Shown here: piece after piece, positions 43,010 through 49,993 of the stretch
Numbering within the stretch: position 1 is the first letter of the stretch
How the letters are laid out: every line of letters begins with the position of its first letter
DNA from: Lepidodermella squamata
Lineage: Eukaryota > Animalia > Gastrotricha
DNA length: 64,000 bases
Assembly (NCBI GenBank): GCA_047495785.1
Contig: JBLDXI010000002.1
Span: 1,674,001-1,738,000, forward strand
Direction: 5' to 3'
The notes under the pieces: generated by a model
The model's input: the letters and a program-made list of their open reading frames with translations, nothing else
Database searches by the model: none
Told to the model about the DNA's origin: nothing
Position numbers and translations under genes: made by a program

Positions 43010-44014
43010 CCGCTTGTTTTCGCCGTATACCGTGAAATCCATATTAGAAGGTAGAACCTAAATAGAGGGCAGGCCCGTTTATAAGGCAGAGGGTAAAGGT
43101 CGATTGTTTGAAATAAAGGGCAGACCCGATTTAGAGGGCAGTGCCCTTTGATTGGACACAAATGATCCACATGAAGCATGGAAGCGAGCTCGTAAAGGTT
43201 ACCCGCTGTCTCTTGTCAGCTAATCCACCTTAATCCCTGAGTGTCAGCAAATGATCGCGATTCGTTTAGACAACGCTGAGCGCGATGGGTCGCTTTCTAG
43301 CAGCATGTGGTGGCTATACGCGAAGATGGATAGCAAATTGGCGGCAAGGATTGAACGGATTTTCATGTGCTACCATGCGACTAGGTCATTTGAAAAAATA
43401 TAGGGCAGACCCGAAATACAGGGCAGGTCTCGTTAATAACGTTAGCGACGCGCCAAAACAACCACTTAGATGATTCATCCGAACGTACTTCATGAACGTA
43501 ACGTAATTCAGCTAATACGTTCGGTTTTTTCATGACCTGAACGTAATTCGATTTTACGATCGACATGTAAGCGATTTTACGAGTCGAGGGTAATGAACAA
43601 GTACGATATTTTACCATCTGAATGTAAAACGCGTGTACGATAGGGTCGTGAACAAGGATTACTGTCGAGATGTACTGAGCTACTACGAAGTGAACGTAAA
43701 CACCAAATACGATTGATTCGTACCCAACTTTTACGCCAAGAGCGTACATGAAAATTACGTTCAGATAGTAAGCATGGTTTTACCACTAGACCGTACATTT
43801 CTCTTACAACCAGGACGTAAATGACCATTACTATCGATTAGTAATTCGGCATTACTATTTCACTGTGATAATATAATACTTTCAAAGCATATTCACCATT
43901 TACAATCCTATCGGAGGCGCGAATAACGTTCGAAGCATTATTTATTAGAACAGCCTTTCCACGCTACTCTTAATCGCTGAGGCTGCAAAAATAATCTTTC
44001 TTTTGATATAAGTA

Positions 44015-44165
44015 CCGTATTTTTTGCTACAGCATCCCGGGCTACTAAAATTTCAACCTCGAAATTTTGAAAAATTCGTGAAATTGAGTGTTAGTTGGTC
44101 GTTCAGTTTCATGTTTTCGAACTGACTTGACACCTCATCCCTGGGTTACTGTAACACAAATACGG
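44015..44165. mobile_element. pogo/Tc2-like MITE (151 bp), nested
   Basis: TA-CCGTATTTTTTGCTACAGCATCCCGGG ... CCCTGGGTTACTGTAACACAAATACGG-TA. Confidence 0.75.
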
Positions 44166-45013
44166 TATTCAATTTTTGCGAAAGAAGCGCAAAACGAGAT
44201 ACAATAATGCATGATAGCAAACGTTTTTTATCTTCATCAGAGCTGTCATCATCAAAAAAGGCAACTTTTGTTTGTTTCTACTTTAAAGAGAGTGAACAAA
44301 TTTATCGTTTTTTACCGGTTCGACCTCTTCAGCGTGAACAATTAGTAGCGATTTTAGTTTTTCCACATAAATGCTCGAAATTATCGACATCTCCAGCATA
44401 TCCAAAAGATCTTTTTTCAAGGCTGTTTCACTCCTCGGGGTAGAATAAGCTTTAGGGGGCGGGCCATGTGGTTTCGATGAGGTAATAGCTGCGTAGATCC
44501 ATGGGCAGTGCGCTTCATACCTTTGGAGGAATAGACATGTAGTGATGACTCACTTATTATAGAGATCGTATCGCGCGCACAACGTGGAGCTCGATGCCTG
44601 CCTCACTTGCGCGCGCGAGATGAGGAATCGACAGCACGCTAGTACCATTTTTTCGTCAAATTTTATGATATTGAGCTGTGCATTGGAATGTCTATTGCAG
44701 TGTGCGAAGTAGGATCCGGGAGCTGAGGTGTTTTCTATTTGTTTTCTAGGACCCAGCCGAAGAAATCAAAGGGTCCTCCTGTGGTTTTGGCAGCCTTCCT
44801 CTGGTTGGATTCCCAGAGCTGGGGTGTCGCACCCCTGTACTTCGCACCCTGGTCTATTGCCTTGGAGGAATGGTATGTCTCTATTCCTCCAAGACTGTTA
44901 GCTCATTTCCGGACCCCCCTTAGTTTCGTGCAGGCCCCAACATTAATAGCTCAATCAGAGGGTAAAAGTGGACTTGCGCGCAAACGATAAATCAAAATGT
45001 TTAAATTTCAGGG

Positions 45014-45283
45014 CCGCGCGTGCTACTACTCAGGCAGTCTTTATTTACCAAAATAAAGTTCAGACGATTCCCTATAGAATTGATATAGGGTTCTCGCTTG
45101 AAAAAACTAATGGGAAGATGACACGCCTGGCGCGCAAAATCTAAGGTGTGTGTGTGAAACTTTCCCCCTTATTTTTCACGCGAGAACCCCAAATTCAATC
45201 GATAGAGCATTGTCTGAATTATTTGTTGGTATAGAAACCGAAGTAACCCTTGAAAGTAACCCTTCAACATCTTATAGCGCGCG
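45014..45283. mobile_element. Foldback (palindromic) element, nested
   Basis: TACCAAAATAAAGTTCAGACGATT...GGGTTCTCGCTTGAAAAA is mirrored by TTTTTCACGCGAGAACCCC...ATTGTCTGAATTATTTGTTGGTA, with CCGCGCG/CGCGCGG at the outer ends. Confidence 0.6.
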
Positions 45284-46392
45284 GTATTAAATATGTTAAA
45301 AATGTTGACTTAGCCAACGCTAATATGACTAATTTGCCTTCAAAAAATGCCAAACTAGACCTCGCGACTACCTAAATTGGCAAGAGACAGAAAAAAATCT
45401 GCTATACCTTCGAGCTAGGGCAGGTGGTTTTGACTAAACAAACGAAGACCGGACCGGTTCTTTTTCCGAAATGGGTATGAACCTTGGAGTTATAGCCTGC
45501 ATGAAGATGTCAATAACCCATGAGTGAAATCACGCATAATTTATGAGTTGCGGGAGCCGATCGTACGTTTAATTACTTTCAAATAGTACTACAATTTACG
45601 ATCGAATCGTTACAAGTCTTAACGTCAGGAATGTACTTATTTGTTACCATCGGATAGTACCACATTATACGTTTGGATGGTTATTGGCTTTTACATCAGA
45701 CTCGTAATTTTATTTTACGTGCAGGACGTACTCGATTGTACGTTCAGTATTTTACGTTCTGTTCGTAAACAATAATTACAACTGTATGGTAACAAATCAT
45801 TACGTTCGCCGTTGATCGTAATATGCAATTTACGTTCAGCGACCCGCAGAGCCGATCGTACTTTCCTGAAATGATCTAAAAATAGTAAAGTGGTTGTTTT
45901 GGCGCGTCGCTAACGATAAGGCAGGGGTTCGATTGTTTCAAATATAAGGCAGTGCCTTCTAATTCGGATTTTACGGTAGCTACATTTTCAACCAAACTTG
46001 AAACATCCAACTGAAATTGTTAAAAATAATTGTAGTCAGCAAATAATTGTTTCCGGAGGTCTCTAGGCTACAACTTTATCGGCTCCAAGTTTTATTGGGA
46101 TTTCTGTACTTGCACAAACGATTTTGCACAAAAGCATTTGCACAAATGCAGTTGCACAAAATATTTTGCACAAACTCCATTTTTAAAGCGGAATCAAGTT
46201 TAATAAGAAAATTGAATATACCAAATTGAAGACAAAGCCCATGGGCATCAAAGACTGATTTCGGGCCCTGCTTTCTGAGATATTTTAATGCGTCCGCTTC
46301 GAGTTTAAATTACAAGGGGTGGCGAGTTTCACGTTCGGACCTAGGGCAATGGTGAATTGAATAAATGAATTTTATTGTCTTAACTTTCAAAA

Positions 46393-49290
46393 ATGACCTG
46401 GAAAACGGTTTTCTGGGGTTTTTTGCTGGTTATCTCTGGCTGGTTGCTCTGGGATGTAGACCAGATTGCTCGCCTCATTACGAGCAACACGCTGGTCCTA
46501 AATTTATGTGGGATTGAACATGTTTTCGAACCTTTTTTCCATCTTTTCCGATTTTCATTGAATTCGCTGGTAATGCTCTCAACAATAATCATTGGAACTT
46601 TGCTTATCGCCGTGGGTGAATCCTCAAGAATTGAACTTCTGTCCAACTTCAAACCGAAACGCCTTGAATTCGAAACACCAAGAACCGTGAAGAAACGTCG
46701 TGGCCCTTGCTAGTCGTCGATAACTGCCATTAAACGCCGGTTTGTTATCCTTGTTGTTTGCTTTGCTTTGGGCGAGAAACTGCAATCTAACTATGAATCT
46801 AATTCAATGAAAGCTGTACAATTGCCCCGTCATAGCGGTTTCCAAATGCAAGACATCTTGATAATACGGTATTCATGTCGCAGGAAGCTCATTCGTGGAA
46901 GAGGCCAAGCAGATTGGTTGGTCTATTTGTTGCTCATAACTGCAGGTGACATTGAAATGAACCCTGGCCCGGTATCATCAAACGAAACAATTGATCATGT
47001 ATGGTCAGGCAGCGTCGTTGTTGCTCAGGTTGAAAACGCCCTGAACGAAACAAGGGTTTCATTGGATTTCAACCCAGCTGATAGCCCTCAACCTGCACCC
47101 AGTTCGATTCAGAAACCCAAAAAAGAAAAGACGGTGGTCTGCACTGAAGAAGGTTGCAAAGCTAAATTTCTCGATAACAGAGGCCTTGGATGCCACATTC
47201 GAATGAAACATAAACTGCGGCTGGAACTAATGAGAATCACGTGGAACCTACAGTGGAATGTTCTCACTGTGATCGCAAATTTGCTACGAATAAAGGTTTA
47301 GCTCAACACATCAGGTCAGCGTCGGAAAGAAACGGTCGAAAAGTTTGCAAGATCTACAACTACTACAACTGTTGGAATCGAAAAAGAAGATCGTACCGAG
47401 ATGACCAAATCAAAGAAACAAGTTTCTTTTTTTGCTGAATGGAGCGTCAAATTCAAAACTGTGATAACTAGTAACTGTTCCGATGAAGAATTCGACGAAG
47501 CTGTGTCAGAATTCATGGAGAACCTCCCTAATGTTATTGACGATTTACCGGGCCCTAAGCACCCGGCTCGAAAATATGTCGCTGCCCGAAAGAAAAAGAG
47601 AAAGAACAAAAACTCGCCATCGAAGAAAAACTTTAAGGCATCGTCGAATCCTGCCAGAGCAGCAAAGCGATCGAGAGAAAAATCTAGACATCAATACGAA
47701 TACGAACTGGCTCAATACCTCTTCTACAATCGGCGGCGTCAAGTCGCAAGATTAGTGACCAGCAAGGCCAAGTCCAAAGGTTGCCTAATACCGATAAGTC
47801 AAATTAATTCTTTTTTCGCAACACGATGGGGAAAAGCTAATGACTCGACACGACCTTTCTACGACAATGCGATGACAGTAGACGAACAAACAAAAATTGA
47901 CTCTACTTTCGAATCCGAAACAAGCGCTGACGAAATAAAAGCCGCCGCGGCCGGGATAGCACTTGATACATCTCCTGGACCAGACAGAACACTAATGAGA
48001 GTACTTCATGCGGAAGGCTGCATTGACGTTCTTGTCCTCATATACAACTCCATGCTGAAAAGGAAAATGCTTCCGAGGAGCCTCAAATTAGCAAGAACAG
48101 TGTTGATCGACAAATCTGGAGATTTGGGTGACCCAAACAACTGGCGTCCAATTACGATAACCTCACTTGTTCGAAGGGTTTTCGAACGAATGCTTGATCG
48201 ACGACTACGAGAATACGTAAGTTTTTCGTCTAACCAGCGTGGATTTACATCATGCGCCGGTACACATAAAAACTCGTCGATTGTTTCCGGTTGTCTAAGA
48301 AAAGCGAGGGCAGAAAAGTCTACATGCGTTGTAACCTTTCTGGATCTGGCAAAAGCCTTTGACAACATTGGCTTTGAGCACATTCAGCGCACTCTGGAAA
48401 CATTACCGATACCAAGCAACCTGCGTGAAATGATTCTGGAGCTAATTAATCATAATTCCACTCAGATCGAGGCAAATGGTCACAAAACTTCTAAAATCTC
48501 ATTTCAAAGAGGAGTTATGCAAGGCTCACCAATCTCACCAACCATCTTCAACCTTTGTATCGATTTTGTCCTTCGTGAATTGTCAGAAAAAGAAGTAGCT
48601 GATGCCTATGGTTTTAAGCTTTCATCAGAACTAGCAAACGTTTCAGTGCTCGGCTTTGCAGACGACACAACCCCAGTCGGAAATAGTCGTGATTCCGCTG
48701 CAACACTCGTCGAAATGGCTCGAAACCTCTTCTCTCAAATAGGCTTGGAAGTTAACGTAAAGAAATGCGCAGCGATTATCGTGGAAAATGGTGTTTTATC
48801 CTGCGATCCTTTGATTTTAAGCAACGGAGATTCCATTCCGGCAATCAAAAACGATGAAACGATCAAATATCTTGGCGTCACCTTCCATGATGAAATTGTG
48901 TTTGACGAAGCAGCCGTCATCTCTGAACTGAAGGAACAACTAGAACTGCTAGCAAATTCGAACCTATTACTAGCAGACCAAAAACTGACTATTTTGACTC
49001 AGTTCATCTGGCCAAAGCTTATTTATCCGTTTCAAACGGCGCCAATTAAAGCGATCAGGAAAACATTTTTGGAATCCGTTGACGTCATTATGCGTAGCGT
49101 CGTTAAAGAATGCGTCGGTTTGCCTACAAGCACGCCCACTAGCTTCTTCTATGCTGCTCGTAAACATCGTGGTCTTGGCCTTCCGAAAGCTACTTGGGAA
49201 GCTTATCTTCAAATATATAATATTTGTAGAAAATTGTTAGTTAACGGCGAACCCCTGGTACTGGCCTGCAGAAAAATGCACGATAAATAA
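46393..49290 (+). pseudogene. Retrotransposon polyprotein: hydrophobic leader, 2A-like peptide, ZnF, ZnF, RT (stop at 46711, compensating frameshifts near 47212 and 47320, endonuclease missing)
   Basis: ORFs 46393-46713, 46768-47301 and 47401-49290 share one frame, while the second zinc finger lies in a shifted frame. The RT ORF ends shortly after the thumb with no CCHC/PD-(D/E)xK region. Confidence 0.75.
46948..46971 (+). other. 2A-like ribosomal-skipping (StopGo) motif DIEMNPG/P
   Basis: WLVYLLLITAGDIEMNPGP matches the D(V/I)ExNPGP consensus with the typical LL..AG upstream context. Confidence 0.85.
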
Positions 49291-49993
49291 CCAATACTTA
49301 TTATTAAGAAATATCACCTATACTGAAGTTAATTAATTCATATCTCTGTGTCTTAAAGGCAATGTTACTAAGAATTATGTAACGCAGACCACCAATAAAT
49401 CGGTATCTCTCTCTCTCTCTGAAATCAATCAATCAACGATGCCATGTCCATTTTTTCTGCTACTATCACTCAAGACTGCGCTGCCCTTGCATTAGACAGC
49501 TTTTCTAGGCATTGCATGATGAAATCCGCTATGAAAATGGAGTTTGTGCAAATGCTTTTGTGCAAATGCTTTTTTGCAAAATCGTTTGTGCAAGTACAGG
49601 TAAATCGTTTTATTCTTTTATTTACCGCTGGGCCGTGGCCCCGGATTTCTGAGGCGTTTCTGATGGTGGGGCATTTCCTCCTAGACAGTTGCAAGCTTCC
49701 CCCCCTCTCCCTCTCCCCCATTGCTAGCCGCTGGTTTTTCACCGCAGATCTCCCGTGTGCTGCCATATAGGCTGGGGGAGTGATGATGGATCACTTTACA
49801 CGTGTGATCAATAAGAGTAAAGCCGGTGATTAGGCGCGTGTTAGGCGTGTGATGTATTTAAAAAACAATGATGCATCGCGTGCCTCTTATACTTATGCCA
49901 ATTTAAAAGCTCGTAAACACATTGGAGAACATTTGCATTTCATTTTTACTATACCAACTTTAAGCTGTTTCATCGGCTCCTCTATCGTTCGCA

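Follow-up and report, generated by a model that had tools for sequence, protein, structure and literature searches.

The 24-bp lattice analysed here occupies both subterminal regions of a transposon of the gastrotrich Lepidodermella squamata, and comparison of related copies suggests that it is probably an array of phased, dyad-symmetric protein-binding sites, read by a protein that a Sola1-type cut-and-paste element itself would encode. The window, a stretch of 64,000 nucleotides (G000:C2:1674001-1738000), belongs to a genome of 121 Mb in 151 contigs. Long ORFs are few in it, and the genes seen were of TALE-homeobox, ankyrin, AAA/NACHT-like and reverse transcriptase type. The lattice was found within a 2,476-bp element bounded by terminal inverted repeats (TIRs) at positions 43440-45915 of the window (Table 1).

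A preliminary description of the sequence had listed 13 TAC triplets between 43555 and 43853, and all of them were found, each with a GTA-type triplet 12 bp downstream and with GTG in place of GTA at two of these (43648 and 43865). Between 43531 and 43870, the TAC to GTA offset of 12 bp and the TAC to TAC offset of 24 bp each occurred 11 times, while adjacent offsets were close to zero. The longest strict alternating TAC/GTA chain with steps of 12 ± 1 bp had 17 members (43660-43855), compared with 5 for the longest alternating chain in 200 mononucleotide shuffles of the window. The two-unit pattern TAC-N9-GTA-N9-TAC-N9-GTA matched 8 times in the window against an expectation of 0.00 from 100 dinucleotide-preserving shuffles, and all 8 matches fell inside the two ends of the one element. 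In the whole genome TTAC-N9-GTAA-N7-TTAC gave 32 matches, with 18 clustered in four copies of subfamily A1, which includes the window element, and 14 singletons; its reversed control gave 57. Fourier analysis of periodicity in the element ends was dominated by harmonics and was uninformative. Tandem Repeats Finder (TRF) reported nothing at the lattice, as had been anticipated for ordinary repeat finders. The lattice is real and particular to its transposon family. It had been placed at the left end only (43531-43867); the left array is indeed there, with a single +10 phase slip at 43602/43612, but it begins near 43485 and has a counterpart at the right end.

Table 1 Features of the window element (positions are those of the window)
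Feature	Position	Strand	Evidence or remark
Left target-site duplication, ATAA	43436..43439	.	Direct 4-bp repeat of 45916-45919
Left 28-bp TIR	43440..43467	+	Inverted-repeat search; begins CGTTAGCG
Left subterminal lattice, about 16 units of 24 bp (17-bp dyad + 7-bp spacer)	43485..43867	.	
Remnant of transposase C-terminal exon	44316..44531	-	A2 exon residues 141-214, 50%; tblastn residues 108-212, 41%
Nested unrelated high-copy short repeat	44523..44851	.	Dozens of 85-97% genome-wide matches, at query positions 1087-1415 only
Second remnant of the same transposase exon, inverted	45338..45487	+	Internal rearrangement
Right subterminal lattice, about 13 units, reverse-complemented	45555..45861	.	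TACGATCGGCTC motif bounds both sides
Right 28-bp TIR	45888..45915	-	Inverted-repeat search and genome-wide matches
Right target-site duplication, ATAA	45916..45919	.	Matches left copy

The 28-bp TIR of the preliminary description was recovered by the inverted-repeat search. The nested repeat and the two opposed remnants of the transposase exon indicate that the window element is rearranged and non-autonomous. The motif bordering the right array, TACGATCGGCTC, lies at 45849-45861 and 45555-45567 on the minus strand and was found in the same places in L037, hence in both subfamilies. Repeated ATA(A/G)GGCAG-like motifs flank the insertion at 43395-43435 and 45920-45965, and the element may therefore sit within the subterminal repeats of another element. 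A neighbouring element is bounded by inverted arrays of 57-69 nt of a TTGCACAAA-type motif (46104-46192 and 49525-49599) and encloses an ORF of 629 aa for a reverse transcriptase (47401-49290, RVT_1 E = 4e-36).

To define the repeated unit, 83 half-sites from four arrays were all turned to read GTA and combined in a sequence logo. The flanks of the half-sites were alike in both orientations, approximately T-C-n-G-A-(A/T)-C-GTA-A. As TC-n-GA is its own reverse complement, a TAC together with the GTA 12 bp downstream forms one 17-bp imperfect palindrome. Each unit thus consists of a dyad of 17 bp, written approximately TTACGATC-N-GATCGTAA although its inner part is degenerate, and of a poorly conserved 7-bp spacer after it. 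In the 13 window units TAC and GTA are fixed, and the preceding T, the following A and an inner A and G/A are semi-conserved. The earlier estimate of about 6 fixed positions out of 24 is too low for the informative positions, since the T that precedes TAC, the A that follows GTA and an inner TC-N-GA are semi-conserved as well. Filler identity among the units was 35%, against 26% in the null, and neighbouring units were no more similar to each other than units far apart; the lack of extra likeness between adjacent units argues against a recent minisatellite. The 24-bp period corresponds to 2.29 turns of B-DNA, and consecutive sites turn by about 100 degrees and do not lie on one face. Such a rotation would suit a helical protein coat or an altered DNA twist better than binding along one face.

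The 28-bp TIR gave 313 genome matches with up to 3 mismatches, compared with none for the reversed control. The majority of the matches were MITEs of about 170-200 bp (at least 15 pairs among the first 100 matches, those listed), which retain the TIR and about 50-95 bp per end and so carry 1-2 sites per end. Copies with arrays are few and fall into two subfamilies, about 74% alike and with the same 28-bp TIR: A1, comprising the window element, L033, L032, L031 and the tandem copy L036, and A2, comprising L037, L035 and L034. The 8.6-kb L031 was considered as the autonomous partner and rejected, the DDE_1 and DDE_3 fragments in it being nested pogo/Tc1 insertions. L036 contains three tandem copies of the family's left end, spaced at 715 bp (contig C15, L036:996-3140), and on contig C34 a 2,640-bp segment with the right end and ORF1 is tandemly duplicated (L034:984-3651). 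TIR or MITE copies also adjoin tandemly duplicated cytochrome P450 genes in L038 and L042 (p450 E = 1e-56 to 1e-79). Within L038 this TIR and an identical flank recur 4.8 kb apart, so that the duplication takes in the element end.

Direct 4-bp target-site duplications (TSDs) were found in all 13 complete elements, mostly ATAT, with ATAA, ATAG, CTGT and ATAC also present. Since duplications such as CTGT, ATAG, ATAA and ATAC are not palindromic, a true 4-bp duplication is proved, and a TA duplication in the style of Tc1/mariner was rejected because these four recur as direct 4-bp repeats. Membership of CACTA (En/Spm) was rejected, as the termini are CGTTAGCG with a 4-bp TSD as against CACTA with a 3-bp TSD; membership of hAT (Hermes-like) was rejected because the TSD is 4 bp and not 8 bp and no hAT or Dimer_Tnp_hAT Pfam match was obtained. 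According to one study (PMC3845634, citing Bao et al. 2009), a 4-bp TSD of AWWT type is a hallmark of Sola1, for which a transposase of about 630 aa, chiefly invertebrate hosts and MITE derivatives are also given. The family described here has terminal inverted repeats and shares with Sola1 the AWWT-type 4-bp TSD, the transposase size of about 630 aa and the MITEs. These features point to a Sola1-type family, an assignment that rests on the TSD and the general fit rather than on reference Sola1 transposases.

The preliminary description had proposed to look for the autonomous partner through the TIR, and this search yielded a three-gene parent of subfamily A2 at L037:624-5330 (G000:C34:1206623-1211329). 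It is 4.7 kb long with the TSD ATAT, and runs from the end corresponding to the right of the window element to that corresponding to the left. Its genes encode a PB1-like helper (ORF1), a protein with one zinc finger, and a transposase. The transposase is about 640 aa, has one TAA stop and is split by a short intron common to family B (see below). The transposase exons of families A and B were searched separately, not joined, and no Pfam match lay above threshold, the best being DUF7869 (E = 0.016); the N-terminus has a conserved Cys-rich block. The small ORF contains a C-x2-C...H motif and is homologous to an ORF of family B, which had weak Pfam matches to zf-C2H2 (E = 9e-4) and zf-BED (E = 0.11).

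ORF1 (L037:1291-2070) encodes 260 aa, of which the first 75 or so are conserved in A2, family B and a third locus, L065. AlphaFold models of low confidence (pLDDT 48-49) gave the order beta-beta-alpha-beta-beta-alpha-beta, and a Foldseek search with the N-terminal domain (model pLDDT 49) returned PB1 domains as all of its top 11 matches, led by the PB1 filament of NBR1 (E = 2e-3 to 1e-2, TM 0.5-0.64). Pfam PB1 gave no match to ORF1. Conserved residues include an invariant lysine of the first strand (K7) and a W-x-D-G...D-E-E-D-L stretch; we take this lysine and the acidic stretch to recall the basic and acidic faces by which PB1 domains polymerise, as a lead only. The C-terminal helices showed a weak, non-significant likeness to SANT/Myb (2yum, E = 0.84). 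A word search of 5.8 billion proteins gave no significant match for ORF1, HMMER against 1.84 billion representatives gave one low-complexity match only, and Pfam and the Atlas gave no usable relatives. Given this lack of relatives in large protein searches, ORF1 might not be a real gene. At L065:1495-2259 (minus strand) there is a paralogue of 255 aa, and upstream of it (L065:2680-2825) about 10 direct TTKWGCAC motifs are spaced 8-30 bp apart, most commonly 11 and 22 bp. This may be another pair of array and helper in a different element.

Two sister families were found. Family B (L057:1638-7033, TSD ATAC) has the same three genes, a transposase about 42% identical and a similar TIR (CGTTCGTGGCGCGG...CACTT). 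After splicing, the reading frames of the family B copies look intact. Its lattice has about 12 units per end, made of CTGTAC-N6-GTACAG dyads (TAC-N6-GTA) with a period of about 27-28 bp. The short intron common to families A and B follows an N-F/C-x-I-F motif of the transposase (L044:1657-1730 and L037), and family B has an additional intron of 51 nt. Family C (L055, TSD ATAT) has one gene without introns, an intact transposase of 631 aa (L055:2093-3988) about 33% identical, and neither a lattice nor a homologue of the PB1-like or zinc-finger protein was found in it. The relatives of this transposase are unnamed proteins of about 30% identity, some carrying DUF7869, and the three with a species name are all from arthropods. 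L060 holds a further transposase relative, without a recognisable TIR. The lattice appears to go with the helper genes, a suggestive pattern of two families versus one. When JGI metagenome contigs were scanned with an IUPAC pattern of the TIR positions that A and B have in common, two matches were obtained, both by chance in GC-rich bacterial DNA and without a lattice.

Alignment of the ends of A1 (window) and A2 (L037) beyond the TIR, two subfamilies of a single genome, revealed 141 identities in 151 TAC/GTA columns (93%) and 317 in the 564 other columns (56%; Fisher p = 3e-20), a contrast somewhat inflated because the aligner can anchor on the conserved triplets. By phase of the unit, identity was 83-100% for TAC and GTA, 67-72% for the inner C, G and A, and 28-50% for most other positions (56-72% for a few), so that the profile has its peaks at the two triplets and shoulders over the inner TC and GA. 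Gaps between the aligned left arrays sum to about one 24-bp unit, the sole large indel between them. In the control, young A1 copies 86-98% alike, divergence was nearly uniform (motif 92.7% versus filler 88.2%). The contrast between subfamilies and young copies is what would be expected if selection acted in the active lineage and copies decayed neutrally once inserted. The earlier proposal of phased palindromic protein-binding sites is borne out as to dyad symmetry, 24-bp phasing and conservation of motif and spacing, and protein binding itself is what we infer from these. That selection acts on spacing rather than sequence was half correct: the spacing is kept, but the TAC and GTA triplets are themselves constrained. 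The arrays have the marks of subterminal repeats: copies of the motif point both ways, are present near both ends and are conserved within the active lineage.

The same comparison bears on whether the lattice could be a functionless, decayed 24-bp minisatellite in which TAC and GTA survive by chance or mutational bias. Uniform divergence, which the preliminary description had named as the mark of such a minisatellite, was nearly reached within A1 but not seen between the subfamilies, although half of the motifs there hold a CpG; likeness along the whole unit was likewise not found. Three identical 25-bp tandem units with one dyad each, at about 240-340 nt from the terminus of the right end of family B, show that such arrays can grow by tandem duplication. 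Against this origin for the lattice as it stands, both subfamilies keep the same lattice at both ends, and adjacent units are no closer than distant ones. A decayed minisatellite is in our judgement very improbable. Just as little weight can be given to a structural role, in which the palindromes would form hairpins or cruciforms where the DNA is single-stranded or supercoiled, instead of serving as binding sites in the duplex. The single strand of the lattice does fold modestly better than its shuffles (z = -2.8, none of 100 shuffles as good), but local hairpins do not line up in the predicted fold, pairing in most dyads is limited to TAC/GTA and 2-3 inner bases, too weak for stable extrusion, and both half-sites are conserved base for base, without compensatory changes.

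If a protein reads the sites, it could come from the host or from the element. A host transcription factor, insulator or silencing factor would make the arrays a promoter or enhancer, or else a target of host control or a shield from it. The right array does separate the TIR from the first gene, the expected place of a promoter, and the inner ATCGAT/GATC-like core presumably recalls the sites of BED-finger host factors. The identical lattice at the 3′ end argues against a host protein, the motif clusters nowhere else in the 121-Mb genome, and the different spacing and flanks in family B fit co-evolution with an element protein better than one host factor, so that we consider a host protein improbable. 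The transposase itself might bind every dyad through its Cys-rich N-terminal region, the array then serving cooperative transposase loading as in Ac/Ds or Hermes. Binding of subterminal repeats by an element's own transposase occurs in several superfamilies (PMC10368747), the Cys-rich block is conserved here, and families A and B, with diverged transposases, also differ in array geometry. Yet the homologous transposase of family C has the same block and no lattice, the lattice accompanies the two helper genes (though in only two families versus one), and the commonest family members are the MITEs with 1-2 sites per end, which speaks against an array for transposase loading. We regard binding by the transposase as possible but doubtful.

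The reading we prefer, and consider likely, remains that of phased dyads bound by a protein of the element. The half-sites, approximately TCnGAwCGTAA, would face each other with centres 12 bp apart and 7 unconstrained bases after each pair, and a dimeric or oligomerising protein of the autonomous element would fill them cooperatively, coating about 300-400 bp per end. The likeliest candidate is one of the helpers, either the PB1-like domain, whose tail may be SANT/Myb-like, or the single zinc finger of BED/C2H2-like type; the alternative is the N-terminus of the transposase. The coat might help to pair the two ends of the 4.7-kb element, and it may regulate the genes of the element as well or instead, since the right array lies upstream of ORF1, the first gene. 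Because MITEs move although each end has just 1-2 sites, the TIR and the sites next to it suffice as the minimal cis requirement, and the long array is an accessory of full-length elements, dispensable for movement. These MITEs, and the presence in the parent of two extra ORFs for putative DNA-binding or oligomerising proteins, common to families A and B, make a helper no less likely than the transposase to be the binder. Rather unlikely, and put forward tentatively, is a more specific form in which a polymerising helper, with a head-to-tail PB1-type domain and a small DNA-binding domain, reads the dyads and builds one filament per end, the filaments pairing the ends for the transposase and the spacing being set by the pitch of the polymer and not by the DNA helix.

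To our knowledge nothing is known experimentally of how the ends of Sola transposons are recognised and paired. The family offers a clean cis-element for this, a defined 17-bp dyad in a fixed 24-bp register, with natural variants at hand in the sister family of other spacing and period and in the MITEs with 1-2 sites per end, and with three candidate binding proteins encoded within the same element. Reading of the lattice by a polymerising helper would give a eukaryotic transposon a new route to its synaptic complex, and the filament would represent a novel transpososome architecture, peculiar to Sola1 elements with several genes; with the transposase as the reader, the lattice would be an unusually regular version of the theme of Ac, Hermes or En/Spm. 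As repeat finders miss such arrays, scans for motif lattices could help to delimit and classify elements. In the literature searched, with the founding Sola paper outside it, we found no paper describing such a lattice and no Sola1 description of phased subterminal dyad arrays or helper genes, which is absence of evidence only.

Among known systems, the array resembles the subterminal repeats of En/Spm with TNPA and those of Hermes with its BED domains, by analogy, as the element belongs to neither superfamily. In En/Spm, TNPA, a second element protein distinct from the transposase, binds the subterminal repeats (PMC2613891); no homology was found between that helper and the helpers here. Both have many copies of a short motif that point either way and lie no more than a few hundred bp from each end, and in both the motifs change from one related family to the next but the TIRs remain similar (PMC2613891). 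En/Spm has CACTA termini, a 3-bp TSD and irregularly spaced 12-mers; the element here has CGTT termini, a 4-bp TSD and 13-16 dyads of 17 bp at each end, kept strictly to a 24-bp register. The BED domains of Hermes bind 17 and 14 subterminal repeats, for which phasing is crucial, and a palindromic pair is bound cooperatively there (PMC10368747), while a BED/C2H2-like finger is encoded here. However, the Hermes sites are of 4 bp, mostly non-palindromic, irregular and asymmetric between the ends, whereas those here are regular and the ends alike; and the BED domain is part of the Hermes transposase, with a TSD of 8 bp, whereas here the finger is a separate small gene. Most likely the subterminal arrays are of a known kind in a new and very regular form, and what sets them apart is the strict register, the 17-bp dyad, the similar ends and the setting in Sola1, a little-studied superfamily.
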